Below, one piece after another: positions 8,513 to 51,010 of a stretch of DNA of 64,000 bases (positions are counted from its first letter, which is position 1; each line of letters opens with the position of its first letter). The DNA comes from Epithemia pelagica (Eukaryota > Protista > Bacillariophyta): assembly GCA_946965045.2 (NCBI GenBank), contig OX337233.1, forward strand, positions 1,612,001 to 1,676,000, written 5' to 3'. Under the pieces are notes generated by a model. That model worked only from the letters and a program-made list of their open reading frames with translations. It searched no databases and was not told the origin of the DNA. The position numbers were made by a program, and so were the translations under genes.

Positions 8513-8530
8513 ACCAGGACCGGTCGACAA

Positions 8531-14814: not shown

Positions 14815-15681
14815 AGTGATGAAGACAGCAATGATGATACTGAAACGTACAATGATGAAGACGAAGAGGGGATAACCAAATCTTGGAAAGGATCGAAACG
14901 CCGCAGAAGATTCTCACTTGGGACCAAAATGAAGATTGTAAAGTCCCTGACAAGGTTGATGACCGGAGAGGGGATGTCGCAACGAAAGGCTGCGGCCAAA
15001 TTCAATGTCACACACAAGCAAGTAATTGAATGGAGAAAACAGTTACCTAAGACAAATGAGAAACGTAATATCAGGGCTAAGGCTTTAGGGGATGGTCGTC
15101 ACTCAGGATTGGATGACATAGAGAATGAAAAATTGAAGTTTATTTTGAGCTATGAGAGCAAGGCATGGGTGTAAGCATTTCAATGGTTGCAGTGAGAGCT
15201 GCCCAATTGAGTGAGACATTCAAGACCAAGTCCTCTTCTGATTAGTATAATGCAGCGCATCGTTTTGTTCGGCGCCACCGATTTGTTCATCGAATTCCTA
15301 CCCATTAGTCTCAAAAACATCCCAGTGAGACTTCAACTGAGGCAACCAACTGGATGCAAGTCATCCGGCCCAAAGTGTTACACAGAAATCAAGACTTTGT
15401 CATAAATATGGATCAAACACCACTTCCTTTCAGCTACGAAAGGAATGTGACATTACCCCAAATAGGAGAGAGTACAGTGCACATGCGCAAATCCACGAGC
15501 GACACAAAACGTGCAACATTTGCCATGACGGTCACAGCATCCGGGAAGGTCCTCAAGCCAATGCTTATTTTCAAGGGAAAATGTCAGGGCCGGATTGTAG
15601 CAAAAGAATTCCCAACATTCCCTGACAGTTGCATTAATGCCTGTCATGAGAATGCTTGGATGGACGAGAAATGTATGTTTT
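14815..15681 (+). pseudogene. pogo-family (HTH + DDE_1) transposase 1, 5' part
   Basis: HTH (MSQRKAAAKFNVTHKQVIEWRKQ), NMDQTPL, TVTASGKVLKPMLIFKG, ENAWMDEKCM. Continues after copia 2. Confidence 0.85.
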
Positions 15682-17994: not shown

Positions 17995-18950
17995 TCATCC
18001 GTCAGGGGAGAGGTTGGTTGTAGCTTGTAAGTGGGAGTGTCCGTGGTCGGAACTTGGACAACACGGCCTTGGTGTCGGTCGGAGGACCCTGGGACGCGCC
18101 AATATACTGGTATCACGAGCCCACAAGGACAACTGGAGCCCCCCATCATACACGAGGGACGGAAAGGCATCCGCCACACCACGGTCCGAATCCAAAACAT
18201 AATCGGACGACATGGAAAACGACTGGACGTCGGGATTGTAAAAACCAAGGCCATTACAAAAGTTACTGCGGCCTACGGTGATACCCACAAAATTGCGAGC
18301 CTCAAACGTCTTGCGAGAGCGTTTCCCGTCGGTCGGCCGGTGAAAATAACCAAGAGAGCCAAACGGAAAGAGCACACGATAATCCGGGGAGCGGCCTAAA
18401 ACAAGTGAAGAGGAGTAGTGAGATCCTCCCCAGCACGGACCGGCAGCATGTTCATATGGTGAAAGGCCTCCCGGAGGGCCCAAAACCAAAAGATACGCGG
18501 AAGTTTGGCCTCAGCCAAGAAGGGCCGGGCCATCTGCACGCCAGTGCGCCACGTCCGCTCAACTAAGCCGTTAGAAGATTGACGGCGAGGAGCAGCAGAT
18601 CGAACAGAAATACGAAGATCCCGAAAGAAACGAGATAAGCCGCCCCCCAAAAACCGACTATTGAAATCGCATTGAAGGGTGCGAGGAACACCGCCAGCAT
18701 CGACCAGGAACCGCCAAAAGGCGTCTTGGAGATGATCCCCGCTACTGAGATGGCGCAGACCATAGCAAAAGACCAACCGAGTAGCACTGTCCATCAAGGT
18801 TAAACAATAGTTATAACCACCAGGGGACGTGCCCGAACCGTAGCCAATGTCCATGCCAACCACATCCAGCGGACGACGGGCCCGAGAACGCGACCCACCA
18901 CGGCGACGTTGATCAATAGTAGTGAAATCGCCAACAGTTAGGTTCGTCAC
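17995..18950 (-). pseudogene. Integrase of copia 2
   Basis: VGMDIGYG, LQCDF, SNGLVERTW, FPFGSLGYF. No protease motif is seen between gag and integrase. Confidence 0.85.
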
Positions 18951-29226: not shown

Positions 29227-32069
29227 GTGTTAGAAGCAGCCATAATGGTTTCCCAAACAACTCTGGTTGGCTTCTCCATGGGTTGCCAGTCTCAGGGCCA
29301 TCGCAACCTGATGAAACGAGCGCCAAGGAAAGACCCACCACCCAAAAAGCTCTCCCAAAGGTCAGTCTTTGGTGAGGAAAAGTTTATTCCAGAGAAGGAA
29401 TGCCCAATCTGCAAGGCAAAGGCACTGGGACTTACCAAACCCCACAAAAGCCACCACCAACGCTGCCCACACAACAGGAAGACAAAGGGGCTGGGATCGA
29501 ATGACACTTGGGCAGGGGAAATCTGTGTTGACACAGAGAGGGTGAACAAACTGTTGGCTCAGGAAATGGCAAGGCCTATTGCTGGGCCAGAGACTTGCCA
29601 CCCATCCAACAACAACCAAGAAGCCTTGGAGAGCTTCATGGCTCCTCGCAACAACTGTGCACAAGGTTTGCCCAAACCTTTCGCACTGTCAGTGGATTGG
29701 GATCGTGAGTACGCTGCACGAAGAAAAGCAGAAGAGCGAGAGAAGAAAAACGTTAGCACGCGTCCGGCCCTATTCACTCCCTCAACGGAACTCAACAATA
29801 CTATGGAAACCGTTAAGCCCCCTACCGTAAGTATTCCAAAAAAAAATTCGAAAACTACGAAAGACGTGACAGAACCAGCGCACGCACCTCTTGAAGTGTT
29901 TAAACAACAAATTCTGAGTCGTTGGGCAGATGTGACAGATGATGTGACTGTGCCAAAAATGGTGCACGCGCTTGCGGGCTATATTGCGGACTCGTGTTTT
30001 GGTCACACGCGCAGTACACAGAAATTGCAGTCGTTCTTCCGTGGAATGGCATTTTGTGTACCCCCCATCCGAGGTAACACGTGTGCTCTGTATGATTCAG
30101 TCGTGAACCAGGAAATCTTGGTAGTGGATTGGGAAATGTTCTTCCCCGATCATTCCCTTCGTTGTCCACGATGCGACGGTACTCTCCAGCGTACTCGGTC
30201 TAATTTTTCAAAAAACAAGACTCTGTTTCCGTTGTTTGGGATGAATGGTCCCCCAATGTACGCCATCCTGATGGGGTATAAGTGCCCCTGCTGCCGGGCG
30301 AGCTTCCAGTCCAACGATGGAGAGCTTCTTGCCACATTGCCGATCTACATGGCAAATTGCTACCCGGTCGAGCCGAAGTATGCAAGAGGTAACCAGCATA
30401 TCACTAAGACGGCAACACGACACTTTGAAGGATTGATGCTAATCTACGGAAATGGAGATAAGTGCTCTAGGATGTTGCTAGATGGGATTAACAAGGACTA
30501 TGAGGAGAGAACTGCCTCCTACTACTCATTCTGTAAGGAAGCGAACAAAAAGGGTGAAGACTACCCTGTCAAGGATGGTGAGTGGTTAGTACGTTACCCA
30601 CCTTTGGGAGAAACAATCCGCCAACTCTATGACGATGCTGCAAGTTCAGATTGGACCTGGTACAAAATATCAGATCATGACAGAAACAGACGTGAGATTC
30701 AAGGTGTAAAATGCACAAAAGTCATGGCTCACGACCATACTCATGAAGTCGTGAAAAATTACCCCTCCAGGATCAAGGCTGTTGCATTATGGGATTCCTC
30801 AAATGAGAGAGGTGAAATAGCAGCAGCAGTGTTAGTCCCGACTACTAAAACAAAGGATGTGGCACACGCAACAGAGCAGCTTCTTCGACGTACCTGCTTT
30901 GAGCCGAAGGCAATGTATACTGATACATGCCCACATGGAGAAGATTTTTGGGGATTGTTGGTTCCTGGAGCAAAACTTTGCCTTGGACTGTTTCACTTTC
31001 TACAACGGATATCCAAGACCTTGCGCAATCGCCACATCGACCATGGCAAGGCAATTCGCGCTTTGTGTTTATGAGTACGAAACAGAGGATCTAGAAAAAT
31101 TGTTGGATGCTTTGAAAACAGGAACTCTTTCAAGTGTTGGGCGTTGTTATACTGAAGATGAGATACAAGATATGATGAACACAAAGGTTTTCCGACAGCG
31201 ATACGGAAAGTACTTACGCAAGAAGATACACGGTCATTGCAAGCAACCTTGAGCGATGGAAGGTGCTGTTCAAAGTTGGCGAATCACCCGGGAAGCCTCC
31301 AGGCCAAGGTAGACTAGACCCCAAGACCAACCAAACCTTGTTCACCCACAAAACCCACGATGCAATTGAAAATTGCAAGAAGAAGGCACAATATCTTGCG
31401 GATCCCTTGCCCCTGAACGAAATGTATAGTGAGTTGAAGGCAAATGCAAACTCTAAACATGGGTTGTCTGAATGGGATACTTGCCGGGGTGAGTCAATGC
31501 TTGAGTCCTTCCATGACAACCTGTCCAACTTTGCAAACACAGGCATGAGAGAATCACTTGCCGACAATCTGAACCTCGCAGGAACCGCGCGATACAATCT
31601 TCAGATCCGTCATAGGATCCGAGTCCGAAACAAGTCTGAAGAAGAAAGAGCAAAAATCCCAGCAGGATGGGAGTTTGTGGTGAGTCACTACAATCATAGT
31701 GCACTTGCTCACATCAACAAGTTGGCGATTGGTGCTGGAGCATCGCCACCATTTCAGGACGTCGAAAACTTACCTCAGGACACAGGCGAACGATTTTTTT
31801 CGGAATACCTCGCCGTACGAGCCGAGGTTGCAAGAGTGCCGAAACATCCATTGAATGATCGGTGCCAGTGTTTTCAATGTGGGCGCAGTCCGGTGAGATT
31901 GCCACATGATGCATCGATTCCAATGACAACCACAACAACAACAGCAGGCGACCTTGTCATGGTACGGTTGAACCCGTACAAGAAAGCAAAGACGTCCAGT
32001 GGGCAACAAGCAATGCAACAACAGCACCAAACCACAACAACAGTCCAGCAAACAGATATTGGGGATTAA
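29227..32069 (+). pseudogene. Unclassified large DDE-type transposase with zinc-finger motifs (at least two breaks)
   Basis: CPIC..H..HQRC, CPRC..CPCC, AHDHTH (D1), YTDTCP (D2), GLFH, RGESMLESFH (E). The order resembles the C/DxxH class of DDE transposases. Confidence 0.6.
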
Positions 32070-32082
32070 TTTCCATCAAAGG

Positions 32083-33354
32083 ATGTCTGACCCAGTTCTC
32101 AAGGGGGGCAGCTTGGCTAATCGTTCGAACGATGGGCCCACCGCCTTGCCCTGGGAAGACTCTCCGTCTAGGAAGTCTTCCGTGAGAAGGGCGGGACTGG
32201 CGACGATTCTTTCTGATGAGCAAATATTGGGCAACTTGGAGCAAGACAATAAGGCCACCCATCTTTCTTCAGTCATCCATTGTTTCAAATCTAAGAAAAG
32301 TTCCTCACAACGGACACAGGCTGCCTTGTGTATATTGGAGGCTGGTGGTAAACCACCTCCTTCCTCATCTAAGCGTTTCAGACGACATCAAAACAAACAA
32401 AGGAAGAAAAAAAAACAAAAGCTTCAAAATCTCTTCCAAGTTCCAGATGTGCCAAGCTCCTTCAAATGGAAGAAATCAACGTTGGAAAAGAAAATGATTG
32501 CCTTCCATGATGAACATTTGGCAGATGACACGAAGAACAAAGGCTCCAATAATCAACCATTCTTTTCCCCACTTGCAGAATTGGTTACAACGGATGTGGG
32601 GAGGGCCGGAGCCATATTTCGAACTGATGATTCAACACTGCCTGTTTATATCAAGACGCCTATGAGTGAAATGACAACACCACTTATCCAGAAGAAGATC
32701 CTGTGCATATTTGAGAAATTCGAGGATGAATACAAGACTCCCCAACAAAGAGGTCAATCCCGCTGCGTCGGATTGGAGTCCCACAACTCGTCATATATCA
32801 CAATTGGTAAACATGCCAATCGTGGAGGAAAAGGCATCGTCGATTCAAAAATGAAACTTCTACATTGGAGAGAAAAGGAAACCCTGATTCGGTTCGTACG
32901 ACAAGTGGAAGAATGCTTCTGTCAATGGGTCGACTCCTCCTTTTTAACTGGCTTTTCCGTGATGAAGGCAATCCAGGAAATCGAAACTCTCTCTTTTGAA
33001 GGCAAAGAATCAACCTTTTTCTCTTCCATTGCTTTCGGAAAAAATGTTTTCCTTCCAGCCCATACAGACAACGATTTCTGTTATTCAGTTGTCATGGCAC
33101 TCGCGAGAGAGCCCGAGAAGACAGGTGACGACATCCTATGCTACTTTGTTTTCCCAGAGCATGGGCAGAAAGTTGCAATGAGAAATCTTGACTTTCTCAT
33201 ATTCAATCCACAAGTGTACCATTGTGTTTCAAAAAGGGTAACCCACGACGATGTTTATTGTGCCTCGTTTTACATGAAAACTGTAGTCGTTGGGAAGAAC
33301 GACAACTCCATCCCCCTGAACGACCTTGAACAATGTCTCTGTAATAACTATTAG
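32083..33354 (+). CDS. TET/JBP-like Fe(II) dioxygenase (423 aa from ATG 32083; the frame is open from 31999)
   Basis: Double-stranded beta-helix core: FSSIAFGKNVFLPA-HTD-NDF..YFVFPEHG..VAMRNLDFLIFNPQVY-H-CVS..SFYMK. Basic NLS-like run upstream. Confidence 0.72.
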   Translation: MSDPVLKGGSLANRSNDGPTALPWEDSPSRKSSVRRAGLATILSDEQILGNLEQDNKATHLSSVIHCFKSKKSSSQRTQAALCILEAGGKPPPSSSKRFRRHQNKQRKKKKQKLQNLFQVPDVPSSFKWKKSTLEKKMIAFHDEHLADDTKNKGSNNQPFFSPLAELVTTDVGRAGAIFRTDDSTLPVYIKTPMSEMTTPLIQKKILCIFEKFEDEYKTPQQRGQSRCVGLESHNSSYITIGKHANRGGKGIVDSKMKLLHWREKETLIRFVRQVEECFCQWVDSSFLTGFSVMKAIQEIETLSFEGKESTFFSSIAFGKNVFLPAHTDNDFCYSVVMALAREPEKTGDDILCYFVFPEHGQKVAMRNLDFLIFNPQVYHCVSKRVTHDDVYCASFYMKTVVVGKNDNSIPLNDLEQCLCNNY

Positions 33355-33451
33355 AACTAGTATCTAACACTATCGTTTCATAGGGCAACCAATATCTCCT
33401 AGTGAGCATTTAGTAACTGAGGAGCATGTTTTCTCATATATTATGTTGTTC

Positions 33452-36400
33452 TCAATCAAACTGCGTAAGTCCCAGTTTTGCTCCACGGAATCTTCGACAG
33501 TGACGGGAATGCTCCGAATTTGATGAAACCCATTCTTGGCCATGATTATGGTTAATTCTTTGTGCCATGTCCTTGCGAATAGATCTTGTAAGTTCACGTA
33601 TGCTGGCAACTGGCTTCATCAAATCCACCGCGTTGTCATTATAGTTTGCTGAACAAAACAGCTTCTTAAGGTCCGTGATTTCTTCCATCATTAATTTGAT
33701 AAATGAGCTTGGTACCAGAGTCTCTCCGTATTCTTCATCGCATTTCTCGTGAACATCATCGTCGAAAACATCACCGGACGTTTCATCAACTACAACGTCA
33801 GCAGATATTTCCTCATTGTTTATCTCACATGTTTGCGAAGTGTTTCCGTTTTGACTGTCATCATCATTAGGATAAGGATTGTCAACAACACCAGGAATAG
33901 TTGGTATTGAAGAACCATACTGAGGACCAATATCCTCAGGAGCTACAAAAGATTCTTGTGTTAGAGTTTCATGATTTGCCATTTCAATAGGATTCTCTGG
34001 TAGCAAGAATTCTTGAAACGTATCTACGGCTCTCTTGATTTGTTCGTCGGAATAGTTCACGCACTTTTTTTGTTGTTCTTCTATCCAATCCGGAATATGA
34101 CCTGTCTCCGGACAGTAGCTCCACAACTCCTTCTCATTCCACAACCTGCCTGTTTGTATAGGGAATTTGGGGCCATTGATGTCATTGGTCAAAAGCTCTT
34201 TTAACATGTCGTTCACGGTATTGTCAGTACTTTCATTTGTTGATCGAAAAGCAAAGAAAATATACTTTTTCCACCAAACCACACTCACATCATGGTGTGA
34301 GAATCCGTTATACTCATCGCACTCAAAACTCAAGACTGCCGCTTGATGAGAACATGGATATCCACATCGCTGGAACGTCGAACAAGAACACACCAGTCTA
34401 CCAGTCTCATCCAGTGTGACCGTCCGTGTTCAATGCCAAACAGGATGGAGGCGTTTCCTTTCTGTTTCCAAAACTGTCTGTTCCACATTGATCACATCCC
34501 ATGACCATGGAGACTGTGGTTGTCGTCGTATGGCATATTTGATCCTGTTGTCCCAAGCCTTATTCACTATATCATGGCACAATTCAGTTACCATTCCATT
34601 TAAAGGAAGTCCCGTCTGCTTCATCCAAACAGATTTTGATTCCACTCGACTGGCCGCTAGTCTGACCTGAGAGTTGATAGTGACATCTGATTGGAACTTC
34701 AATATGGCAGCATTAGCTTGCACAGTTCCACCCGGAACAACTGCAGCAGAATGTTCCTTCATACCACAATTTGTCCCTTCATGACTGCTGTTTGTACATT
34801 CATCATAATGTCGAAGATTCTTACGGTAACAATGGACAAGATGCCGGTCATGTAAAAAAACATATCCTGTTAGGAAACGTTGAATTTTCCATCGTAATTC
34901 TCTTGAAAGAAACTTGCGAACATTTCTGGAATGAATATAGGCCAGTAGTAATGACTTTGATGTAATCAATTCGTCTTGAGTCTCGCAATACCTGGGGTAC
35001 ATGAAAGTATAACACCACTGTTTGACAGTGTAGCAAAAGAGTTTGTACTCCCGACTATAGTTTGTATCAATTGCATTACCAAAAGAGCAATGCCGTGACC
35101 AACCTTTATGGATGATGTGCCATCCACATCGAAGACGAACACAATTTGGCATGAACCGTCTACAAGCTTCTTCAACTTCGGTGATTTCATGCGAATCTCC
35201 ATCAGTGATTATTGCTTTTATCTCATTAACCCATTCCCCACCAAGAAGCTTTGGCAAAGCACAGGAGAAAACCCATCGAAATGTCGCTTGTTTTTGATCA
35301 CGCAAGAACATTCGCAGTATAATGATGTACTTTCCAAAGGATGTGCGAGTTGAGGCCGTTAGAAGAGGTCTAGATTCCTTGTTGGTTCCTTCAGTAACAT
35401 CCACCTTGAGAACATGAGGAAATAAGCGGAACATACGCTTCTCCTTGTTTGTGATCCAAGCACATGCGATGAAGAAATTTTGGTCTGGTTGGATTTCCAA
35501 TGTATCCATATCTGCGGAGTATTCATCAAGAATTTCTGCACAAAAGGCAGTCATGTCTGTGACATCTTGTTTCCCATCATCGTATTGGTTCTCACTGAAT
35601 ATCATACCAGCTTGATGCTGGAGTCTTGCATTTATTAGGTTCTGGGGACGGGCCCCCCAAATACAGTAACTCAATTCAGGAGTTGACCGTAACCATTCCA
35701 CGACAGCTTCTGCACCGACTTTAATTCCCTCGTAGTGATATTTAGATTCTGATGCCATAGTACAAAATGCCCACCGCGTTTGCTCGGGTGTAAGTGTAAT
35801 GTCATGATTCGCGTGGAAGAAGTTGCGTCCCAAAGCAGGTCCAGTGTTTGCCTTGCCAAGCTCAGCTGCCCTTTTGCGCTGTTCACGTGTAAGATGTCGA
35901 AGTTTGGTTGGAATGTCTATTGCCATCCGTTTGAAATGGTTACAATGTGTTACTGACCCTGAGCTACGTTTTACATAGAAGCCGTGCATATCGATGTAGA
36001 TGTCAAATCGGAATGAGCATGTGTCTTCGTTTTTGAGTGCGCGATTCGTAACAACCTTCCGTGGACCCTTTTTCCCATCAATTCCCCTGCTGTTGCCTCT
36101 TTTGTCATTGTGTAACGAGATGTTTCGGTGTTCCATTTCAATGCTATTCCCTGGAGGCTGTTTACGCTTCTTGTTGTACCGTCGGTAGCGGTCACACATG
36201 AATGTTCTTGACATGTATGGAGGTTCACTTCCCATTGGAAAAGCCTTACGATTAGCCAATGACTTCTTGTTTGTGTTACCATTCATTACAATAGAAAAAC
36301 CACTCGCAATGGAAGCTCTGGAAATACAGGCTCGTAAGATTGAAAAAGACCCTTGTTCATCAAAAACAGTGCTGGGGTCGGTACAAGGAGGGAATTCATT

Positions 36401-36634
36401 TCTGTTGAAATATGCGTAGTAGCCTTTGATGTGGTCTGCTTGAGGGAGCCATCCAATGAACGCGCAAATGTCGACGTCCATTGTTGTCGCAGTTGAAATA
36501 CAGTCATCTCCAGTGTGCATTGGGAATGTCATAGGTGAGACCCATTCTGTTTCTAAGGAGTTAAAGTATCGGTCCAATTCATATTGAATTCTGTCATGAA
36601 GATTTGTACAATCGTTGTTGTCGTCCATGGTCAA
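33452..36634 (-). pseudogene. MULE/Mutator transposase 1 with SWIM finger; one frame (1060 codons) broken by a single TGA
   Basis: KVDVTEGTN (D), ITDGD (D), CGWH, SSHEG (E), SWIM CSC..CGYPCSH. The two ORFs are in frame across PVWH*TRTV (stop at 34430-34432). Confidence 0.88.
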
Positions 36635-36779
36635 GCACTGGGTGACATATCAAGAGGAGGGTCCAGATGTGGTGAGATGCTCAAGCCGATTCAAATTCCA
36701 ACCGTTATTTGCATTAAGATTATTTAAACACTTTTGGGAATGGCAGGCGGAATTGTGAGGCACGGCAGGTGGCTTGATA

Positions 36780-38480
36780 ACAGGATAGGGATGAGGATAA
36801 GTCTGTGCGTCTGTCCAGTATTTTGGGGACCTATAATGGGATATGTTCTTCTCCTGCCTGTGCTCTCATATCAATACAGGATTCCAAATATAGCGAAGAA
36901 ATATCCAGTCTTGCACAATGTATGTGTACCAATTGTACACTCTTTCTCGTTAAATGCGTCATGCTCACCAGCAAATAAATGAAGAATAAGTTTCTTCGAA
37001 AGTAGGTGAGTACCGGTTGTTACTGATCAACAGTTAGTTGCAAAAGCTTACCCTTATTTCTTTTAACAAATCGCTGTATTCAATGTGGGACTCAGTATTC
37101 TCAGAATCCTCACTGGTTTGTTTGGAATTCGCAAATGGGGGAAATAGGTAAGCCCCTTTGGGCTTAGCGCAACACATATACACCAAAAGCGCGCAAACCA
37201 AGCAGACTTCTGGGTTTTCGTCATCCCTGTATATAGAGAGGGATTGCTCTTCCGTGTCACATTTGCCCTTCACCCAAACAACAATTTCGTCAACACGTGC
37301 CTCTTTTTCTTGTACAACAAAACAGTCCGTTCGAAATTGCGCAAGCCGGATTGAGCACACCTATTCCGCACGCAGGAACAGCTTGATCCACGTAAGTAAC
37401 ATTGTCCAGAGTTGTAAGTGACGGATGTCACCACCTTTGGACATTATATGATTTCGGATAACGCGAACTTGCAGGCTCGACATGTGGAGTGCCCGGCGTG
37501 CTTGTTCTTCAGGACATTGTGTACACGCTGAAATCTCGCAGCGCACTTCACGTCATAAGTCGGATCTCCCCTGGGCTTAACTTTATGAAAAGTACAAGTG
37601 TCACAGGGCTCAAATCGATGCATGTGGGTATTCGACCAGTCAATGGGACCACCAATCAACGTGTTCCGTTCGATACACTTCGGACAAACAGGGCAGTACG
37701 CATTGGCAAACTCAGACGCGCAAAACTCACGGTGCAGAGTAGGAAGAGTGACACGACATTTCCAAATATTGGAGGGATCGGACCACCCCCGGTTCCCTTT
37801 TTTTCACCGTCATGTAGTAACGCGCATGAACCAACAACATACTCCCCTTTTTGAGGACCGTTCACAAATTTCACGTGGTTGTTGTGTAGGTCTTTCACAC
37901 GGTTCAACGGGGAAAGGGACTTGTACTGGTAGAAAGTCCCCACCATATTCGGATACGCTGGGAGAGGATCTTTAGGGCGTTGTTTATCACTGCAGATTGT
38001 AGCAGTGAGATAGTCCCCGATCAGAAACGCAAAGCCACCCAGCTCTAGCCAGTATTTGTTGTACTGGGGAAGTGTTTTGTCCGTCCCGTCGTGACTTCCT
38101 CGTAGTTGGTCTGTCACAGCATGGGCGTAGTCATTTGTAGGCGCCGTCATTGCCCATTTGTTTATTGTTGAGATAATACAAGACTCCATTTGATCATTGT
38201 CCTCCTTTCTCAGTGTAGTCACTACAACATCGCCCTTTTTGCATGGTTGTCGTCGTCGTAAGGTACCTGTCTCTGTCACAATAGAGCCAGTAGACAGTTT
38301 TGATTCCACAGTTCCTACAGCATTCACTCTCTCCATGGTTTCTTGAGTCATCCAGGCAAGAGTTTTTGTTTGATTGTTGGGTGTGGGTTGGTACAGAGGA
38401 AGATGAGGTCGACCAAAATGATCGATGCCATGGATCGTTGCATTGGAAGTTGGTGGGGTCTTCCGAATGCATTTAGGCAT
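36780..38480 (-). pseudogene. Second Crypton-like tyrosine recombinase, degenerate, with a predicted 58-bp intron (36994-37051)
   Basis: LWTMLLTWIKLFLRAE (Arg), VKGKCD (Lys), CLVCALLVY, YLFP. After splicing GTAAGC..ACTCAC..AG the frame reads IGTHTLCKTGYFFA (HxxR, with R changed to C). Confidence 0.68.
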
Positions 38481-38832
38481 TAATACCTATCACACCACAA
38501 TACTCACATGTTGTTCTCATCAAAGTCCCACCAACAGCGGCAAAAAGTTTCACTCCAAACCCAACAGCAGCAGCATAACAAGAAGAACGCTGCTTCATTG
38601 CGTTGCTTTGTTGACGGTCTATAATGATCAGGTTGTTTTGTTTTTACTGAACTTGTACAAGAGAGAAGAGTACTGGGTTGGATTTTCCCTTCGGTGTTTG
38701 TGTTGAATCTATATGGTGGATTGCTGAAGTGTTGCTGAGAGGAGAGAAGAGAGAAGAAGAGGATCTCAGCAGCAAGAGTTCTGGCAGTGATTTCTTGCAA
38801 AATCTCCATTGGAGTAGAAGTGTTACTTGGTA

Positions 38833-40802
38833 CTCCCTCTGTAAAGTCTTTGTTGCACCAAAAAATTTCAAGCTGAAGTCATTTCACGGGCGCATGTCCG
38901 TTGGTCAAAATATTATAGAGGCTTATAGCTCTTTTCAATACAAACATTTCCATATATAATTTATATGTTCGATTTTGCATTCCTGACCATCTATGATCAA
39001 AAAAGGGGACGCATTGGAAGCACCTACTTTCATCGCGTACCGGTTGACCTCTAGATGCCACCTACGAGAGCGAGAGGGCCAGGACGCCCTCCTGGAGGGC
39101 CAAAGCGACCAGAGATGCCAGCACAACGCCGTGGTCGGGCCATGTCGGTGCTCCTACAGATGGAGAAAGAAGGACCATTGCCAAGAGGTGCAATCAGGAG
39201 CGTCGCCAAAGATTTTCAGGTCTCTTATTCAACGATAAGTAGACTTTGGGCGCGCGCGCGGAAGTCACGTGCCCAGGGCACAGTTCACACTCCTGAAATT
39301 TTGTCGCAGTCGAAATTCCGTGCTCCCCCCCCCCCCCCCCTAAGTATAATCCAAACACGATTGCTGAAGGGGTTAAATCACTTCCACTGCACACGCGCAC
39401 TACGCTCCGAAAACTCTCCTTTGGTCTTGGCGAGTCTGGGTGTAAGATTTCACACACCCATGTCAAGACGTTGATCAAAGAGGGAACACTTCGAAGTCAT
39501 TCAAGTTCATTGAAACCATACCTCACCGATGCAAACAAACAAACCCGCCTCAACTATGCTGCTTCCTTTGTTGACCCATCATGTCCTAGTAAGTACATGG
39601 ACATGATGGATCTTGTGCATGTCGATGAAAAATGGTTTTTTGTTTCTAAGGACGGCCAAAGGTATATCATGTCGAGGGATGAACCGGACCCTGTCCGGAA
39701 AGTCAAGCACAAAAGCCACATAACAAAGGTAATGTTCATTTGCGCGATTGCTTGTCCTCGTTTTGTGCCATCGTTGAATGCCTGGTGGGATGGTAAGGTG
39801 GGTATTTGGCCAGAGGGGAGTTGGGAACCAGCGAAGAGAAGTTCTGTCAACAGGCCTAAAGGGACTATGGTTTGGAGAAACAAGTCTATCGATAGAGAGT
39901 GCTACAGAGACTTATTAATGCACAAGGTTGTGGAAGGCATCCTCAGTAACTGGCCAGAAAGTGATCGCAGGAACAGAAACATCAGGATCCAACAAGACGG
40001 TGCCAAATCTCACGTGTATGAGAGCAACCTTGACATCATTGATTTCTTTGAATCAGCGGAAGCAAGTCAGGGATTGAAGGCACAACTTTTCACACAACCT
40101 GCTAACAGTCCAGACTGCAACATCCGTGACCTTGGGTTTTTTAGGGCGCTGCAGAGCAGGTGTTTGATTGTTGGGACTGACGAAAAGACACTGTTGGACG
40201 CTGTAAAGAAGGCATTTGATGAGTACCCAAAGGAGATGATAAACAGGACATGGCTTACCTTACAATCCTGCTTGAACTGCATCATTGAGCAGAATGGAGA
40301 TAACACCTACAAAATACCACACATGAACAAAGAGCAGTTGGAAAAGCGTGGAGAGCTGCCTACTGTGCTTGAAGTCACAGGCGCTCTCCACAAACCTCCA
40401 TCTGAATCTAACCTACAACTATACCAAGAAATCTAAATCTAAAACAATGAATACCTGGCCGACCTCCACTTGATCCAGGAGGCGGCCAGGGGCTACGGCC
40501 ATTGATTGTATACCTAGGATTAGAGTTTGTTTTGTTGTTGCTGCTGTGATGCTGTTGTTGTTGCGTTTGGTGTGTTTTTGGTGTGTTGAAGGGAGACGAG
40601 TGGACGTAGGAGACGGCTGGGTTGTGCTTACATCCAGACCAAGGCACGTGCCACAGCCTTATCTTCATCTCCAAAATTTGGTCGAGTTCAACTCCGAATG
40701 AGCCAGCCGTCCTCCTGTAGATTTGTACCAGAGTCTACGTGAGTTTTTAATGCGACTTAAAAAGCCAAACCAGTTGGTGCAACAAAGACTATACAGAGGG
40801 AG
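38833..40802 (+). mobile_element. Tc1/mariner element of the plant-mariner (Stowaway-type TIR) group, 1970 bp
   Basis: 29-bp TIRs CTCCCTCTGT(A/T)..GTCTTTGTTGCACCAA with one mismatch; TA TSD on both sides. Confidence 0.95.
39055..40436 (+). CDS. Mariner transposase, frameshifted at a poly-C run (about 39325)
   Basis: HVDEKWF, IQQDGAKSH, QPANSPDCNIRDLGFF, YKIPHMNK. Confidence 0.88.
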
Positions 40803-41279
40803 TACATATTTTGTTTGCTGTGGTCTATTTCTTGTTGATTGGTGTGGTACACAGTCAGGTTGATTGAAGAGTGGAGTGGAAGAGTGGATTGGATTTTCCT
40901 TCGGTGTTTGTGTGGATTTTCCCTTTGCTGGTTGTGTTGAATTTATTTGGTTGATTGTTGAAGAGAGGAGAGAGGAGAGAAGAGAGAAGAGAGTAGAAGA
41001 GGATCTCAGTAGCCAGAGCTCACCGAGAGGAGATAAGAGAGAAGACGAGGATCTCAGCAGCAAAAGTTCCGGCAGTGACTTCTTGCAAAATCTCCATCGG
41101 AGTAGAAGTGTTGCTTTGGTACATATTTTGTTTGCTACTGCCTCATTCTGGGTTTTGTGTACAGAGGCATAACAAGCAGGAGAAACGGTAGTAGTCTGTT
41201 GTGGGGTTTCTAAACCATTCTGAAACCTTTACCTTCCTCAAAACACACCTTGGCTTTTCACCATTTGACTTGGTGAACC

Positions 41280-43469: not shown

Positions 43470-46400
43470 AACTTTCTTCGACCATGGATGGCGATTCTTC
43501 CCAAAGTGTGCAACTTGCAATAAATCGGGCTATTGATCGACACTTCCATTGGCAAGCTGAACTTTTCTTCACAGATGTGGAGAGTTTTGATGGCTCTGTT
43601 GACCTTTTCCATTTCACTGACAAGCACAAGTATACAGCTCAGTGAATTTCCCTGCAAAACAGGAATGGCCACAAACACAAAGACCCCCCTTCAGTAATAT
43701 TTGACAGAACTTTATATCCACCAACAGATCAAGGTATGAAGAAACTTTTCACCGCAATCAAAGTAGAAGGCATCAAACAAGGCACCAATGTGGTCAGTCG
43801 AAGCAAGACACATGTATTGTTGTGTTATTGCTGCCGAAGATACATGCCCAAACATCCTTTTCTTCAAAACCAAGAGAACAATGCACCCACATTATCTTCA
43901 GTTGTAACAGACAGTAACCAGACTGACAATACACAGCATCCCTTCAATGACATCTCAAACAATGCACATAGCAACCTTGGGAAAGAGAACAAATCATTTG
44001 ACGAAGATGGTGTTATGGTTGGAATTCAAAGATATCATTATCATCGTGATCGAAGCTATTGCCAAGTTGATGGGAAGACATCCAATCGTGGTACTTGCAC
44101 AATGCGACCATTTGAATCAGAGGAAACATGCAAAGTTTCCCTTCGTTTTGGTGTTAAAGAAGGCCCCAATGGATACATCTATCTTAAACAAGGCTGTGGT
44201 CACAACCTTCATTCATTTCATCCGAAGCCGCAGAAAGGTGATTTGCATTTCCAAAAGAGACATTTCTTGAGCAAATCCTCTCAACTAATTGCAAGTGGTG
44301 GAAGGGCTTCCATGGGAAATGGTGCACTCCAATATATTGTCTTGGAAAATCAGCAAGAACTGGTCTCATGTGGATCAATTCAACGACTCCAACTTGATTC
44401 AACAGCTTCACAAATGGTAAACTGGATACGGACAAATGCAGCTGACCCCAATATCAACTTACGTTATTGCTTCTTGTCTTGCACTGGAATCAACAATTCA
44501 GGTTATCATCGCCATCCTAAAGGTCGCCCCCCACAACATGGCAGGATTCCAATTGCTCAAGTAGAAGAGAATATGTCATTTTCCGATACGCTTGAGAACA
44601 TGTGCAGGAGGGGAATTAATAGTGAGGAAGAATCTCATGTTCTTCCCATCGACGACAGTGATGGTGGACTGCAAGACTCTCTATAAATGTTTCAAGAGAT
44701 CCACAGTTCTGATTGCCACTTTGATCTGACATCAAGGAAGATTCTTCTAGGAGCTGGATGGATTTACGAAGAAGCATACCTATATTTCCAGAGATTTCCA
44801 GAAGTCTTGTTCATCGACTCAACACACAAGACAAACAATGAGGGACGTCCTCTTCTGATGATATATGGTAGGGATTTGCATGGGAAAGGGTTCGGGTTAG
44901 GGTTACATGTATTTTCATGCCAAATGAAACAAGTGCTTTCTACAGATGGGTGTTTTTGAAGTGGCTGCCATGCCTTTTGGGTGTCCAAAACATGGAACGG
45001 GTCAGACTAGCCATCACTGATGGAGACGGTCAAGAATTTGAAGCTGTTAAAGAATCTTGTCTCCGTTATCTTGTTAATGTTCGTCGTGGAAGATGTAGGT
45101 ATCATATCGTTCAAAAAACATTCAAAAGATGCATTTCAAATCACATTTGTCTCAATCCCACTGGAATGGCAGTTCTCAAGGCAATCAAAACATGGATATA
45201 CACATGGGGTGATGGTTCCTCATGCATATCTGAGGAACAGTTTGATCTATCCAAGGGGCTTTTATTGTTGAAGATGAAATCAAGCCACCTACGTTCCTGC
45301 ATCACAGAGGATGGATTAATGTCACTTGATAGGTGATTGCAAGAAAAAGTTTTCCCCCCTTGACAAATCGTTTGTTTTCTGGCGTAAACGCTACTTGCGA
45401 TGCTATGATGAATACATGAACAACTCAGGTGAATCAATGAATCGGTCATGTAAACATTCCGATCTAGGAGCAAGACTCAACATGACCATGACTACTTCTG
45501 CCAATGCAATGCTAAGTCATTCGTCATTGTCCACGGAGGATAGGAAAAGCACACAAATCCGCCAAATGGTTGAGGTTCCATTGTTTATCAAGACTGATTC
45601 CAAGCACAATAATGATGTACTCTGCAGTTTTCAGAGTGGAAACATTATACAGTCCTTCACTACAATGAAAACGTTTGGTATGTCCTCAGGAATTCTGTCT
45701 CTCCAAGATCTGAGTTTCGGGAGTTGTCCCCTCCATTCTTTAAGAAAGCCTGGTGTGTGAAGCTCAATTTGAATGGGGTCTTCTTAACCTGTGACTGTGG
45801 ATACCTCCATCCTTTAAGAAAGCCTGGTGTGTGAAGCTCAATTTGAATGGGGTCTTAACCTGTGACTGTGGATACAAACAGCGCAATGGGATTCCATGTC
45901 ACCATTTGTTTGCTATCAAAGACAACTATGACTTATCAGTTCGATGGCAGATTGCATATGGATACTATGCTTACGATCATGGCTACCAAGAAATTACAGA
46001 CTCTTACATTTGAGGTCATACATGCGAGCACGACGGGATTAACATGAAAACACAGTTACTGTAACAACACATTATTTCCATATGTATGGTCGGGAACTCA
46101 GTACTATTCAATTGAGAAGATTTGTGAAGTATTCCATTGTCTGATTCCTTTATAATGGAATTACCAAGTTCACCAGTATCCGGAAAATTATCAAGAAGTT
46201 CCCAATGAATCAGGAAAAGAGAACAATGATGACTTATGTAATCATAATGACATTGATGAGGCGTCCGATTTTCAGTTCACTCAAGAATCAATTAAACTTG
46301 ATCCAGTGTCGTTTGCAGTTCCTCTGACCAGAACAGTCACTCATGCCCAAATTTTGACAATGGTGAAAGACATGCTACCGTGTTATTTCAATCTGATAAA
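43470..46400 (+). pseudogene. MULE/Mutator transposase 2 with SWIM finger, decayed
   Basis: LFIDSTHKTNNEGRPLL, AITDGD, CRYH, NSGESMN, SWIM CDC..GIPCHH. Collinear with MULE 1; the start coordinate is approximate. Confidence 0.82.
45731..45875. repeat. Tandem duplication of about 74 bp inside MULE 2
   Basis: CTCCAT..GTGACTGTGGATAC starts at 45731 and 45805. Confidence 0.85.
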
Positions 46401-46609
46401 TCCCGTCAAGAGCTGTCTTGTCATGTTTTGTATCGTACACGGGTGAAGCAGAGTCGTCATCTCAATTCCATGACTCAAAATTCCAATACAAATAATGTCT
46501 TCAAATATTCCGTTTGACAACAGTCGCGTGTCAACTCAAAATACGTACATGTGCAATCGCTTTCAGTCTACTACATAGTATCTTTTGGAATATTAATAGC
46601 TTTGGATTG

Positions 46610-47009
46610 TTATTTTGTACCAAGTATTTCAGCAACACTCTCTTGAGATGGTGTAAGAGGGACAGAATTGTCATTTCCACCAACAACTGATGTCTCCAGG
46701 TAGCATGACAGACAAATGATGTCTTGTTCCACTGTCTTTTCCATATCACAATGAAAATGACGTGGATTGAAAACCAAAACATCAAGATGTTGAAGAGAAA
46801 CTGCATAGCCATGCTCTGGAAATACAAAATAGCACAACGGTTTCTCATGTACATTTCTGGCTGATTCAGTGGTGACCATTGCTGTAACAACAGAATATCC
46901 AAAGTCATCATCTTTGTGTGCCTGCTGTAAGAAGACATTACAACCGTATGCAATGGCAGGGAAAAACTGTGTTGCCTTGTTGTTTGTGTGCCTGCTGTAA
47001 GAAGACATT
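46610..47009 (-). pseudogene. TET/JBP-like dioxygenase 2, C-terminal half
   Basis: FPAIAYG(C/R)NVFLQQA-HKD-DDFGYSV..YFVFPEHG..FNPRHF-H-C..SCYLETSVVGGNDNS; clearly homologous to 32083-33354. Confidence 0.75.
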
Positions 47010-47438
47010 GGGTGCTTACTGAAACAAGTATAACAACATAACTGACCGACATAATCATAAATGCATCGGGCCCATAACCTCTTTAGTTTCATTTTGGAGA
47101 CCAAAAATGCTCGGCACTCAGCCCCGTCGAGCAAACGAGAAACCTAAACACAACAACAACACAAAATCCCCAACGCATGCAAGATAGCGGCTGGCGTTCT
47201 ATTTAATATATAGATCTGATGAATACATACAACTTTGGTCTTTGGTTTCCCCCAACAGATAGGTTCTAGCCTCGATACACCTCTCTCCTCCCCCTTCCCT
47301 CCACATTCCCTTGCACCATGGAAGTGGCAGACTCCCAACGACCCTTGTTGGAGTCGGACTCGAGTGAAGAGGATTCAACCATGATGCCTTCCTCCCCACA
47401 AAGTCATTCCTCAAGAAGAAGACGCAATCAATGTTTCG

Positions 47439-48542
47439 GTGGAAGTTCAACGCCAAGATGCTGCAAAGGTGGCACAACCCGACTCTCCCTCCTCATCATC
47501 GGAGTCAGAAGCATCTGCTCTTGTGACCAGGCGAGAATCTCCTCGCCTTGCCCTCAAGCGCAAGATCCAAGAGCAAGAGGAGAAGAGGAAGAAGAACAAG
47601 AAACAAGTTCCCAAGACAAAGAAGCCGAAGGCCTCCAAGACAGCAGCTCCTCCTCCACCTCCACCTCCACCTCCACCCGTTGTCCCCAAACACCGTGGCA
47701 ATGGTGGTGCAGGTCGTACGAAAGGGCCTACGTACCAATTCTCTGAGGTGGATGCCTTACTCGATATCCTACAGGACCGTCTTCCTGCTTCATCAGATGA
47801 ATGGGACGGTGTAACCGAGGTGTACAACAAACAACACCCTGGTCGCGAGCAAAACAAGGATTCGCTCAGGAGGAAATTTAATTCCCTCCATAATAAGAAG
47901 GTTCCTACAGGCGATCCTTCCATCCCGCCACAAGTAAAACGCGCCAAATATATTATGCAGGAAATCTGTGCGCGTGTGAATGCAGGCGAAGGTGTGGATG
48001 ACGAGGAATTGGGAATCGAAGCTGAAGAGGCCCAAATCCGCCGGACCCAGCTCTTCCAAAAAGAACAGGAACAAGATGTGGCGAACGTGACAGCTTCGCA
48101 TCATGGTGGAGATGGACCACCTTCTTCTATAGTTGTGAACCAATCTTTGAAGACCGGGCGAACGCCATTCCGTCGCTCTCCCAAGCAAGAAGCTTTGGAA
48201 AAGAAGGAAGCCAAGGACAAAGAAAAGTCGGATCTTATGACTTGGCTTATCATGTCAATGCAAGCGAAACAGGAAAATGACGAGAAGGATCGCAAAGAAA
48301 GGCATGAACAGTCGACTTCTATGCAGCAGATGATGTTTGCCCAAATGCAGCAACAGATGCAACAACAGCAAGAAGCTGCAAGGCGAGACCAACAGCGGTT
48401 CATGCTAATGATGAGCAGTATCTTCGGACAACGCAGTGGAAGCATTGAGACAAACACCGCGAACGTGATGAACAACACGATGAACAACATGACTAACAAC
48501 AGTGGACAACCCAAAGATGACCGTCAATACGAGGAAGTCTAG
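47439..48542 (+). CDS. Harbinger Myb/SANT-like DNA-binding protein (the true start may be upstream, at ATG 47318)
   Basis: FSEVDALLDIL..EWDGV..SLRRKFNSL..PTGDP trihelix motif with a Gln/Met-rich tail. Confidence 0.75.
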   Translation: MEVQRQDAAKVAQPDSPSSSSESEASALVTRRESPRLALKRKIQEQEEKRKKNKKQVPKTKKPKASKTAAPPPPPPPPPPVVPKHRGNGGAGRTKGPTYQFSEVDALLDILQDRLPASSDEWDGVTEVYNKQHPGREQNKDSLRRKFNSLHNKKVPTGDPSIPPQVKRAKYIMQEICARVNAGEGVDDEELGIEAEEAQIRRTQLFQKEQEQDVANVTASHHGGDGPPSSIVVNQSLKTGRTPFRRSPKQEALEKKEAKDKEKSDLMTWLIMSMQAKQENDEKDRKERHEQSTSMQQMMFAQMQQQMQQQQEAARRDQQRFMLMMSSIFGQRSGSIETNTANVMNNTMNNMTNNSGQPKDDRQYEEV

Positions 48543-48565
48543 ATAAGAAAACAATTAGTAGTAGT

Positions 48566-48998
48566 GAGTAATTGGAACGGGCGGTAAACATCTACCTCTA
48601 TGGTAGGAGTAATTGGAAAGGGCGGTAAACATCTACCTCTATGGTAGGAGTAATTGGAAAGGGCGGAAAAGATCTACCTCTATGGTAGGAGTAATTGGAA
48701 AGGGCGGTAAACATCTACCTCTATGGTAGGAGTAATTGGAAAGGGCAGTAAACATCTACCTCTATGGTAGGAGTAATTGGAAAGGGTGGTAAACATCTAC
48801 CTCTATGGTAGGAGTAATTGGAAAGGGCGGTAAACATCTACCTCTATGGTAGGAGTAATTGGAAAGGGCAGTAAACATCTACCTCTATGGTAGGAGTAAT
48901 TGGAAAGGGTGGTAAACATCTACCTCTATGGTAGGAGTAATTGGAAAGGGCGGTAAACATCTACCTCTATGGTAGGAGTAATTGGAAAGGGCGGTAAA
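48566..48998. repeat. 41-bp minisatellite, about 10.5 copies
   Basis: GAGTAATTGGAAAGGGCGGTAAACATCTACCTCTATGGTAG repeated from 48566; the last unit starts at 48976. Confidence 0.95.
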
Positions 48999-49052
48999 GA
49001 TGAACAACACGATGAACAACGTAACAATTAGTAGTAGTTCATGCGGAAGTCA

Positions 49053-50225
49053 CTAGTAGTTATTCATTGCTTGCAAAGCATTTTGACAAAGTTCTGGCAT
49101 GTAGACAGTTTGGATCTGGTTGAATCCGACTGTTGAGGCACGAAAATTATACAACAAAACAATCATACGGAGGATGATGCGCCATTCACCAACTTCTTCA
49201 TAGGGCAGTCTGTCTTTCAAGCGGGGGAATGAGGCTTGAAGGCCCCTCATTCCCCATTCAGACAATTGACGGACTGATGTTGCCGCGTGATGAATGTTCT
49301 GATTCATTCGGACATTGCCATCTTGGTCAAAGTTTGTCTGGTGTGATTTGAGGAGTGACGGCCGACTTTCCCGTCCAAAAGCTGAATCAACCACCACTTG
49401 TGCACCACCATGGGTCCTCTCCCGGTCGTTGATTTCATCTAGTTTGTCGTAGATAGATGATACCGATGCCAGAGTTGAATCATGCCATGATCCGGGCGCA
49501 TTCAAGAGACAGGCCCGGATCAGGCCATCTGGCGAAAACACGAAAAGGTTAGACACATAATGATCATGAGTCCACCCATTGTAGAACATATTCTGTACCG
49601 CTTCGTTTGTGGCCACAAGGAGTTTTAGTCCATCCATAGCCGCCCAGATATTGACAAGATTTGGATACTTGTTGCGGATGAGTTGTTTGAAGCGAGTTAC
49701 TTCTTGTGGAGAGGGAAGCTCAACACGAGCATCGGGGTGGCCTGCGAGCACCTTGACCAAAATCCTCCTACCAAATCGCAACCACACGGACAATGGGTTG
49801 GCTGTGAGGCCGAATATCAACTGCAAGACTTTAAGTGATCCTCTAGTACGCGTCCATACCAACACCAAACCAAGGCCCATAACAGCATTGATCATCCTTG
49901 GTCTCCCTCCTGGCTTCCCTGATAGACGTCGCATGTGGCCTGGGTTAGTGTGCGACTGTGGATATGGAGTATACACATCAAACATTGGGCAGAACAGGCC
50001 TAATAACAGGTGAAAAGCTCTATGGTCGAGACCACACAGGGTGATGAGAGCGTCATCCTGCATTGACCTATACAGATGCATAAATGCAGATTTTCTTGGG
50101 ATCATCAACGCTCCCCTACGAATGACAGCACGTCCTAGGAACGCATTGTCATCCTGCCATTCAACTTCGTCTTCCTCATCACCAAGCTCCTCAAGGAGCA
50201 GTAGCAGAACCGCATATTCAAACAT
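49053..50225 (-). CDS. Harbinger DDE nuclease (DDE_Tnp_4-like), 390 aa
   Basis: AMDG, NAPGSWHDS, VVVDSAF, SVRQLSEWGMRGLQ. Confidence 0.88.
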   Translation of the reverse strand: MFEYAVLLLLLEELGDEEDEVEWQDDNAFLGRAVIRRGALMIPRKSAFMHLYRSMQDDALITLCGLDHRAFHLLLGLFCPMFDVYTPYPQSHTNPGHMRRLSGKPGGRPRMINAVMGLGLVLVWTRTRGSLKVLQLIFGLTANPLSVWLRFGRRILVKVLAGHPDARVELPSPQEVTRFKQLIRNKYPNLVNIWAAMDGLKLLVATNEAVQNMFYNGWTHDHYVSNLFVFSPDGLIRACLLNAPGSWHDSTLASVSSIYDKLDEINDRERTHGGAQVVVDSAFGRESRPSLLKSHQTNFDQDGNVRMNQNIHHAATSVRQLSEWGMRGLQASFPRLKDRLPYEEVGEWRIILRMIVLLYNFRASTVGFNQIQTVYMPELCQNALQAMNNY

Positions 50226-50484
50226 TGTTCTTCTTTGCGATTACACGGCGGAGGGAGGGTTGGAGGGAAGAAAAAGAACTCTTCGGGGGGAAAGCGGTGC
50301 TCGCGTTTATATCCTATATCCAGTTCCTAAGTCTATATAAATCATTTTGACGAAGTGCCATTGCGTTGTGTTTGAGTAGGTGAAATTTCAATTTTGGTTT
50401 CAGTGCGTCCAACAGGCTTAAACTAAAACTTATTGGTTATGTTGTCGTTATGTTAGGTCCTGTACTTAGTTTCAGTAAGCACCC

Positions 50485-51010
50485 ATTACGACCGTATGCA
50501 ATGGCAGGGAAAATGGTGTTGCCTTGTTGTTGTGTTGTAGCATGGAAAAATTCCCATGGGACGAGGCATTTTTGAAAGCAGAGAGAAATGAAGAATCCAC
50601 CCACTCAGCAAATTGGTGTTCAAGTTGTTTCATGAATCAAAACAACATATTGCGCTCATCTTCTTCCAGCAGGTGTAACTTTGATTCAACCATTCCAGGA
50701 CCACCACGATGGGCATTAATGCCCATAATCATGTACTTAGAGTTATGCTCACTTTTTCTGATGAAGCGTGACTGTCCTCGAGAATGATCTGGGCAGCGGG
50801 CTTCAATTTTTTTTAGTACATCCAACAATTCCTGGAAAAAGGATTTTGTCAGACATGGAAGACATCAGTAACATCCACTGACATGGCACTTTTGCCAGAA
50901 TTATGCGTCACTTCCTTCAGATTGCGACAAATTTCATCAGGTACAAGAACCTTTGTTTGTCCTGTCCTCTGGGCTGAAATCATAGGCCATTTCACCATCA
51001 CTGCAATCCA
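50485..51010 (-). pseudogene. TET/JBP-like dioxygenase 2, N-terminal half (may extend to about 51830)
   Basis: RGQSRFIRKSEHNSKYMIMGINAHRGGPGMVESKL..WVDSSFL..FPAIAYGRN aligns with RGQSRCVGLESHNSSYITIGKHANRGGKGIVDSKM..WVDSSFL of copy 1. Confidence 0.75.

Follow-up and report, generated by a model that had tools for sequence, protein, structure and literature searches.

Transposons are held in check mainly by DNA methylation, and enzymes of the TET/JBP family are, to our knowledge, the only ones that attack the methyl group of 5-methylcytosine (5mC). In fungi, TET genes are found together with KDZ and Plavaka transposons, as Iyer et al. reportedly described in 2014. Among Mutator-like elements (MULEs), maize MuDR holds two convergent genes, mudrA and mudrB, between long terminal inverted repeats, and the VANDAL elements of Arabidopsis encode the anti-silencing factor VANC, a sequence-specific binder that brings about loss of methylation on its own family. 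Here we analyze a locus in a 64-kb stretch of the genome of the diatom Epithemia pelagica (contig OX337233.1; the whole stretch is called the window below), at which a MULE transposase gene lies tail-to-tail with an open reading frame (ORF) for a predicted TET/JBP-fold dioxygenase. The explanation that we favor, and hold to be reasonably probable as a whole, is that the locus is a defective copy of a two-gene MULE-TET element whose dioxygenase serves, in active copies, to counter silencing.

In the papers that we found, TET-carrying transposons are described from fungi only, in ten lineages of which none is MuDR (Dileera, Kyakuja, Zisupton, hAT, Harbinger, IS3EU, EnSpm, ESTA, Plavaka and Helitron), with VANDAL and the SET-carrying MuDR elements of Phytophthora cited as analogies only (Kojima 2025, PMC12730594). 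In red algae, Plavaka elements and the Mutator elements of Chondrus crispus share an accessory gene, PAG3, which encodes a ParB-like DNA-binding domain and a putative 2-oxoglutarate (2OG) oxygenase (best HHpred match 2OPW, E 0.016) and belongs to a cassette of three genes, one of them for a SET/N6-methylase (bioRxiv 10.1101/2025.02.11.637652). Our literature search found no report that joins TET/JBP with a diatom, a MULE or MuDR, in agreement with an earlier note on this DNA, made from its sequence alone, whose author knew of no described MULE-TET pairing.

Anatomy of the MULE-TET element

The element in the window (copy A) consists of the following features; related loci are given by their L numbers.

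32065 to 32082, + strand: left breakpoint of the MULE-TET copy; the element starts at 32065, 18 nucleotides (nt) before the ATG
32083 to 33354, + strand: gene for the predicted TET/JBP-fold dioxygenase (open ORF of 423 amino acids (aa), AlphaFold (AF2) fold, conserved columns)
33355 to 33451, no strand: spacer of 97 nt that separates the convergent stop codons
33452 to 34429, − strand: C-terminal part of the MULE transposase after the stop, with the SWIM zinc finger (PF04434)
34430 to 34432, − strand: premature TGA of the transposase (CGA in L005 and L006, CGT in L001)
34433 to 36634, − strand: first 734 codons of the MULE transposase, encoding its DDE/RNase H-like core (PF10551, PF21056)
36795 to 36845, − strand: right terminal inverted repeat of ∼51 nt, from alignment with the L005 and L006 termini

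The dioxygenase reading frame is uninterrupted, and a longer GTG-started version begins at 31999. On the opposite strand, the ORFs 34430–36634 (734 aa) and 33452–34393 (313 aa) share one frame, and 36634–33452 translates to 1060 codons with a single internal stop (the TGA at 34430–34432) besides the terminal one. The N-terminal piece matches the Pfam families MULE PF10551 (E 1.6e-7, residues 408–510) and ZSWIM1-3 RNaseH-like PF21056 (E 3.6e-8), both above their gathering scores, and the C-terminal piece matches SWIM PF04434 (E 4e-6). Among named sequences, the one closest to the transposase belongs to the diatom Cylindrotheca closterium (39% identity). Translation and Pfam thus bear out the arrangement in the earlier note, in which the dioxygenase ORF ends 97 nt from the end of a MULE transposase with a SWIM domain and only one nonsense codon.

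Evidence that the two genes form a unit comes from related loci. All close dioxygenase homologues derive from a single assembly, ERZ21939226, possibly that of the genome to which the window belongs. For two of them, P0001 and P0002 (46% identical), the gene directly downstream is a convergent MULE/SWIM gene. At L001, inverted repeats of 53 nt (9353–9405 and 15262–15314, 98% complementary) surround the dioxygenase gene and its MULE partner and nothing else, with the left repeat ∼600 nt upstream of the dioxygenase ATG; at L002, repeats of 36 nt (8512–8547 and 15294–15329, 97%) enclose exactly the same pair, and both ORFs are intact (559 aa and 1047 aa). L005 and L006 are copies of the window element at 94–96% DNA identity, and their left repeat, on the dioxygenase side, is an inverted copy of window 36795–36845. 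Altogether, the tail-to-tail layout is found at seven of the eight dioxygenase loci examined (window copies A and B, L001, L002, L005, L006 and L036), L035, a degraded dioxygenase fragment, being the sole locus without a detectable MULE. Because the same layout recurs at so many of these loci, the pairing goes far beyond chance. The dioxygenase gene lies inside the element termini with the transposase and has been multiplied along with the element, and we conclude that it is a true cargo of the MULE and not a mere neighbor. Together with the fold described below, the repeats that enclose both genes in two relatives agree with the view of the earlier note that a Mutator lineage captured a TET/JBP-like dioxygenase.

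The cargo appears to be old. The transposases fall into two sub-lineages that are only ∼25–35% identical to each other; the N-terminal part of the window transposase is 69–73% identical to that of L001 and 25% to that of L002, and its C-terminal part shares 60% identity with the corresponding part in L001. With metagenome homologues as outgroups, the eight dioxygenases group into a single clade (support 100/99; deeper branches unresolved), and L002 pairs with L036 whether dioxygenases or MULEs are compared. This pattern fits one old capture of the dioxygenase followed by co-inheritance with the transposase, and exchange of the dioxygenase between elements could also have taken place. Between lineages, synonymous sites of the dioxygenase are saturated (pS 0.75–0.80) at a pN of 0.33–0.38, and three diverged ORFs are still intact; therefore, purifying selection has acted on the gene during its time on the element. 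Taking anatomy and modeled fold together, we are highly confident that this is a two-gene MULE family with a TET/JBP-fold dioxygenase inside its repeats, and that 32065–36845 is a defective copy of it.

Several further features of the related loci were observed. Comparisons within a MULE sub-lineage show faster divergence of the dioxygenase than of the transposase (46% vs 73% identity for copy A and L001; 45% vs 60% for L002 and L036), whereas between sub-lineages the dioxygenase is the better conserved gene (∼46% vs 25%); this contrast could stem from differing rates, from an arms race or from exchange of cargo between elements. L005 (10750–18384) is a deletion derivative in which the one left repeat is fused straight to internal element position 32525, a joint that is also present in contigs of all three public runs; it has two right ends (14905–14937 and 18353–18384), with a 1-kb terminal segment duplicated. 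At L001, a 606-aa gene (7531–9351, − strand) abuts the left repeat of the intact element, points away from it, and matches HhH-GPD, a base-excision glycosylase domain, below threshold (E 6e-4); a glycosylase gene beside a TET-carrying element deserves mention, yet it may be there by chance or be a host gene.

The window copy itself has lost one end. Its right terminus is intact, with the outer end ...GGGATATG, closing at 36845, and the repeat at 36795–36845 also aligns with the right termini of L005 and resembles the L001 repeat in sequence. In public runs of the organism, reads and contigs of other copies break at 36844/36845, and copies of the right flank start at 36844–36846. On the left, other copies of the upstream repeat, in contigs from these runs, agree with the window as far as 32064, where unrelated sequence takes over (library type is unspecified for the runs, so that their contigs say nothing on expression). 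The left terminal repeat is absent from the whole 64-kb window at up to 3 mismatches, its motif occurring once only, at the right end, and none of the sequences that continue past both junctions in other copies was found in the window. The native upstream region and the left inverted repeat have thus been lost: two truncated elements meet at 32064/32065, and the window copy lost its left end by rearrangement against the neighboring truncated repeat. Because it has only one repeat end and a broken transposase, the copy is immobile; its dioxygenase ORF is nonetheless open. The candidate transposon of the earlier note therefore stands as a two-gene MULE-TET pairing but not as a complete transposon in the window, where we see a fossil of the system. 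Alignment of copies likewise defined ends (the L001 and L002 repeats and the right end in the window) but no target-site duplications.

The truncated neighbor on the left lies outside the element:

29227 to 32069, + strand: orfX, a 3′-truncated copy of an unrelated single-gene repeat, in two ORF pieces

It lacks the last ∼250 residues of a ∼1000-aa protein, since the 1070-aa homologue P0156 aligns over residues 7–822 only. An intact 1070-aa homologue (L037, 8001–11213) stands alone between two host genes, for ATG9 and a sulfotransferase, with no dioxygenase nearby. The repeat is multi-copy, and its 41 homologues, mostly metagenomic, have no Pfam domains; a language-model atlas links it with DUF6729 and with KDZ-like DDE transposases. 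Probably, orfX represents a family of single-gene DNA transposons that has been described poorly or not at all.

Family and fold of the dioxygenase

The iron ligands of the window protein are H327 and D329, within H327-T-D329, and H380. Across 63 aligned sequences, D329 never varies, and H327, D331, H380, Y397, K399, R223, R247 and N321 are at least 90% conserved; in an alignment of 11 sequences, H327, D329 and H380 are all invariant. The HTD..H motif that the earlier note read in an intact 423-aa ORF is thus near-invariant in the family. Residues 97–113 form a basic stretch, and we take the N-terminus of the protein to be authentic because it is conserved with P0001. An exhaustive phmmer search places 791 cluster representatives in the family at E≤1e-3 and 413 at E≤1e-10. 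The ones looked up, from metagenomes or from assemblies without annotation, are unnamed or called ‘hypothetical protein’. The language-model atlas places the nearest cluster in Bacillariophyta, which, like the Cylindrotheca relative of the transposase, favors a diatom origin but is no proof of it.

An AF2 model built on the 63-sequence alignment (pLDDT 88.4, pTM 0.88) was compared with known structures in two ways. VIA-align gave Z scores of 18.3 for TET2, 15.8 for CMD1, 15.6 for CcTet and 15.4 for NgTET1; the top 16 entries all belong to these four enzymes (Z 14.1–18.3), and the next matches are FTO/AlkB homologues at 11.5. In a Foldseek search of the PDB, the first 22 places are all TET-family structures (CcTet, CMD1, TET2 and NgTET1), led by CcTet at E 2e-9, and against the AlphaFold database (AFDB) the top clusters are named JBP1/TET or Tet-like oxygenases, with one thymine dioxygenase. 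The language-model atlas also points toward TET/JBP. Judged by its model, the 423-aa protein is a TET/JBP-fold, nucleic-acid-type dioxygenase with an intact iron triad, and the alternative raised in the earlier note, that the ORF might model best as a non-nucleic-acid dioxygenase, finds no support in these rankings.

The putative active site seems to depart from known TET enzymes at one point. In TET2, NgTET1 and CMD1, the arginine that binds 2OG is followed by a base-stacking aromatic residue at +6 and a base-contacting residue at +8 (PMC7854593). The spacing of Y397-x-K399 matches these two residues, and by the same motif spacing the arginine expected at the 2OG C5-carboxylate falls at V391, or at C393 in the other register, neither of which is basic.

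More distant homologues (27–39% identical) occur in contigs from marine and freshwater metagenomes, and there the neighbors are different. A tblastn search with the MULE proteins against 24 metagenome loci and L003 and L004 found no MULE beside them. At L007 (2742–10084) and L013 (39–10603), the homologue lies downstream of a Helitron RepHel gene (Helitron_like_N plus PIF1), which at L013 also has a GIY-YIG nuclease domain at its C-terminal end; L016 resembles L013 in the arrangement of its ORFs. At L032 (383–2932), the gene before the homologue encodes an NDC10_II protein of 849 aa that may be a recombinase of Crypton type. At L022, L024, L025 and L026, the homologues converge with a conserved ORF of 940–1012 aa that has no Pfam match (for example L024 8585–11620, − strand), and the sole lead for the 1012-aa ORF, from the atlas, is to Transposase_21 and Plavaka transposases. 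Other distant homologues have neighbors that were not recognized. The expectation in the earlier note that homologues sit beside MULE transposases is accordingly right for the close ones, seven of eight loci with the convergent layout, and wrong for the distant ones, which accompany other transposon types. The dioxygenase clade thus behaves as fungal TET genes do, as a cargo that moves between transposon superfamilies. A bolder proposal, to which we assign a low probability, is that diatoms and other marine protists have a large, unannotated TET-fold clade, nearly all on mobile elements (MULE, Helitron, Plavaka-like and Crypton-like) and without the canonical 2OG arginine, that modifies or removes 5mC in a non-canonical way.

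CpG decay and the possible role of the dioxygenase

The premature stop of the transposase arose by a CGA-to-TGA change, a CpG-to-TpG transition, as judged from the codon at the same place in L005, L006 (CGA) and L001 (CGT). To see how general such changes are, we compared the three young copies (window, L005 and L006) over 3.4 kb of aligned sequence, with changes polarized by majority. C-to-T or G-to-A changes amounted to 0.185 per CpG C/G site and 0.022 per other C/G site, an approximately eightfold difference, and transitions dominate the differences seen in contigs from the public runs. An excess of CpG transitions is the classic signature of 5mC deamination; it therefore indicates that MULE-TET elements were CpG-methylated in this organism's past. 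CpG decay supplies a motive for an anti-methylation cargo.

Complete members of the family consist of terminal repeats of ∼35–55 nt around a MULE/SWIM transposase of ∼1050 aa and a dioxygenase of ∼420 aa in convergent orientation. For active copies, the following mechanism can be proposed. The dioxygenase that they make would enter the nucleus and oxidize 5mC, or a related methylated base, either on the element or genome-wide. Oxidation of 5mC would then counteract the CG methylation that silences the elements, as has been proposed for the TET-carrying transposons of fungi, and the dioxygenase would be a functional analogue of VANC in the VANDAL MULEs. For this part of the explanation, that active copies escape silencing through 5mC oxidation, we consider the balance of probabilities to be about even.

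Several observations weigh against an anti-silencing TET enzyme carried by a typical MULE. At the level of sequence, the window dioxygenase has no Pfam match at E≤1, and phmmer and profile searches against PDB sequences returned nothing for it; 7 of 63 relatives match Tet_JBP below threshold (best E 0.0023), and the dioxygenase fragment of copy B matches PF20515, ‘Tet-like 2OG-Fe(II) oxygenase’, at E 3.2e-4, also below the cut-off. The canonical 2OG-binding arginine seems to be absent, and therefore canonical TET chemistry is not assured; another basic residue may bind 2OG, or a different co-substrate may be used, as in CMD1. MULEs normally generate target-site duplications of 8–11 bp, but no direct repeat of at least 6 nt, with shifted ends allowed, flanks the L001 or L002 repeats, so that this hallmark is unconfirmed; the only match, a 9-nt pair in one of the L005 pairings, contains a mismatch, lies at unequal offsets and looks like chance. 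Among young copies, the dN/dS of the dioxygenase is 0.5–0.6 on few changes and not clearly off neutral, and no RNA run with the dioxygenase gene was found. Finally, CpG decay cuts both ways: the cargo did not keep young copies unmethylated, and dead copies were unprotected.

The most serious competitor is that the dioxygenase is a real cargo but a writer of some other base mark rather than an eraser, making either a CMD1-like adduct with a co-substrate other than 2OG or an oxidized thymine, which would label the element DNA for transposition, for nuclease protection or for escape from methyl readers. With the C5-carboxylate arginine apparently replaced, and Y397 and K399 placed like the residues that stack on and contact the base, the site would suit such an enzyme; CMD1 uses vitamin C because it has no usable basic residue there (PMC7854593). 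CMD1 is also among the best structural matches (Z 15.8), and the approximately twofold faster divergence of the dioxygenase than of the transposase within a clade points the same way. Nevertheless, TET2 outscores CMD1 (Z 18.3), the conserved R367, R385, R223 and R247 could bind 2OG, and the assignment of the arginine position comes from motif spacing and not from superposition, so that we regard a writer as rather unlikely. Action on another substrate, either N6-methyladenine (6mA) in DNA, as CcTet can perform, or RNA, with a benefit unrelated to CG methylation, would be in line with the top Foldseek match, since CcTet has been solved with both 6mA and 5mC DNA, and with the place of FTO and AlkB next in fold. 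The clear footprint of CpG methylation, however, makes 5mC the obvious silencing mark to counter, and we consider this substrate shift improbable.

The two remaining alternatives deny the dioxygenase a role in the MULE. It could be a passenger without benefit, either a captured host gene as in Pack-MULEs or a domesticated host gene flanked by MULEs. MULEs do capture host gene fragments, young copies decay near-neutrally, and L035 is degraded and has no detectable MULE. Yet the gene is of full length; MULE sub-lineages whose transposases are only ∼25% identical retain its catalytic residues, with synonymous sites saturated; it lies inside inverted repeats in two lineages and multiplies with the element; and its relatives ride Helitrons and other elements. 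A passenger is thus very improbable. Alternatively, the dioxygenase might belong with orfX, mirroring the fungal KDZ-TET association, with the MULE as a chance neighbor. Although orfX is on the same strand, ends at 32069 with its stop 14 nt before the ATG at 32083, and leads in the atlas to DUF6729 and KDZ-like transposases, its other copies part from the window exactly at 32064, the window orfX has lost its own C-terminus while its intact homologue stands alone, and in copy B and at other loci the partner of the dioxygenase is a MULE, orfX being absent. A KDZ-TET unit is contradicted by these findings, the closeness of the two genes being an accident of rearrangement, and we give the idea almost no credence. 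We retain the dioxygenase as a MULE cargo that would counter silencing by 5mC oxidation in active copies.

Other elements in the window and comparison with known systems

The window contains a second, decayed MULE-TET cassette, copy B, to the right of copy A:

43736 to 45760, + strand: decayed MULE transposase of copy B, of the L002/L036 sub-lineage (tblastn and a weak MULE Pfam match)
46610 to 47134, − strand: C-terminal half of the copy B dioxygenase, convergent with the copy B MULE (49% identity to copy A residues 308–412)
47439 to 48542, + strand: DUF6818 gene, part of a 3.6-kb insertion in the copy B dioxygenase
49053 to 50225, − strand: Harbinger-type DDE_Tnp_4 gene, part of the same insertion
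50574 to 50861, − strand: N-terminal fragment of the copy B dioxygenase

The copy B transposase is 25–33% identical to that of copy A by tblastn and 58–66% identical to the MULEs of L002 and L036, and no inverted repeats were recognizable around the cassette (window 43736–50861). We conclude that the second cassette is much older than copy A and belongs to the other MULE sub-lineage. Between the two cassettes, 32-nt inverted repeats (38830–38861 and 40774–40805, 97% complementary) surround ORFs 39055–39474 and 39471–40436, which show a weak match to a Tc3-type helix-turn-helix; this element, bracketed by 92-nt direct repeats (38737–38828 and 41025–41116, 92% identical), is probably Tc1/mariner-like.

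If the dioxygenase acts as proposed, the use of the fungal strategy by a Mutator element of a stramenopile suggests a general, repeatedly evolved counter-defence, and so do marine metagenomes, in which relatives lie on Helitrons and other elements. Should the reading of a non-canonical clade be true, it would place enzymatic anti-silencing of transposons outside fungi, and for the first time in the Mutator superfamily. A compact enzyme of ∼420 aa, very divergent and possibly with unusual cofactor chemistry, would also be a candidate tool and a handle on how diatoms maintain CG methylation. The members to study are intact ones such as the L002 element, not the fossil in the window.

In comparison with the solved enzymes TET2, NgTET1, CcTet and CMD1, the modeled protein shares the double-stranded beta-helix core, the TET-type N-terminal elements, the HxD...H triad and the aromatic-x-basic motif (Y397, K399). 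It differs from solved TET enzymes in its low identity (10–14%), in having no Cys-rich or CXXC domains and in the position of the conserved acid after HxD, at +2 (D331) and not +3, and unlike TET2 (R1896) and NgTET1 (R289), it has no obvious arginine for the C5-carboxylate of 2OG. The nearest report that we found, PAG3, likewise concerns a Mutator-type element with a putative 2OG oxygenase and the idea that a transposon modifies itself. By its description, however, the PAG3 oxygenase is not TET/JBP, whereas the window protein aligns with TET2 and CMD1 from residue 46–54 to residue 411–423.

The fungal TET transposons resemble the present system in having a TET/JBP-fold accessory gene inside a cut-and-paste element or Helitron that multiplies with the element, in the spread of the clade over several superfamilies (here through the Helitron neighbors at L007 and L013) and in the proposed escape from 5mC silencing. 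Unlike those systems, the present one has a stramenopile (diatom) host and a MULE/MuDR carrier, and its dioxygenase has no significant sequence match to Tet_JBP or PF20515; the dioxygenase types described in fungi are PU, AG and PE. With MuDR and VANDAL it shares a MULE transposase and a second gene between inverted repeats, in the convergent orientation of MuDR, so that the dioxygenase occupies the place of mudrB. In contrast to mudrB and VANC, which by their descriptions are not dioxygenases and with which no similarity is to be expected, the second gene here encodes a predicted enzyme fold that could act directly on the methyl mark.

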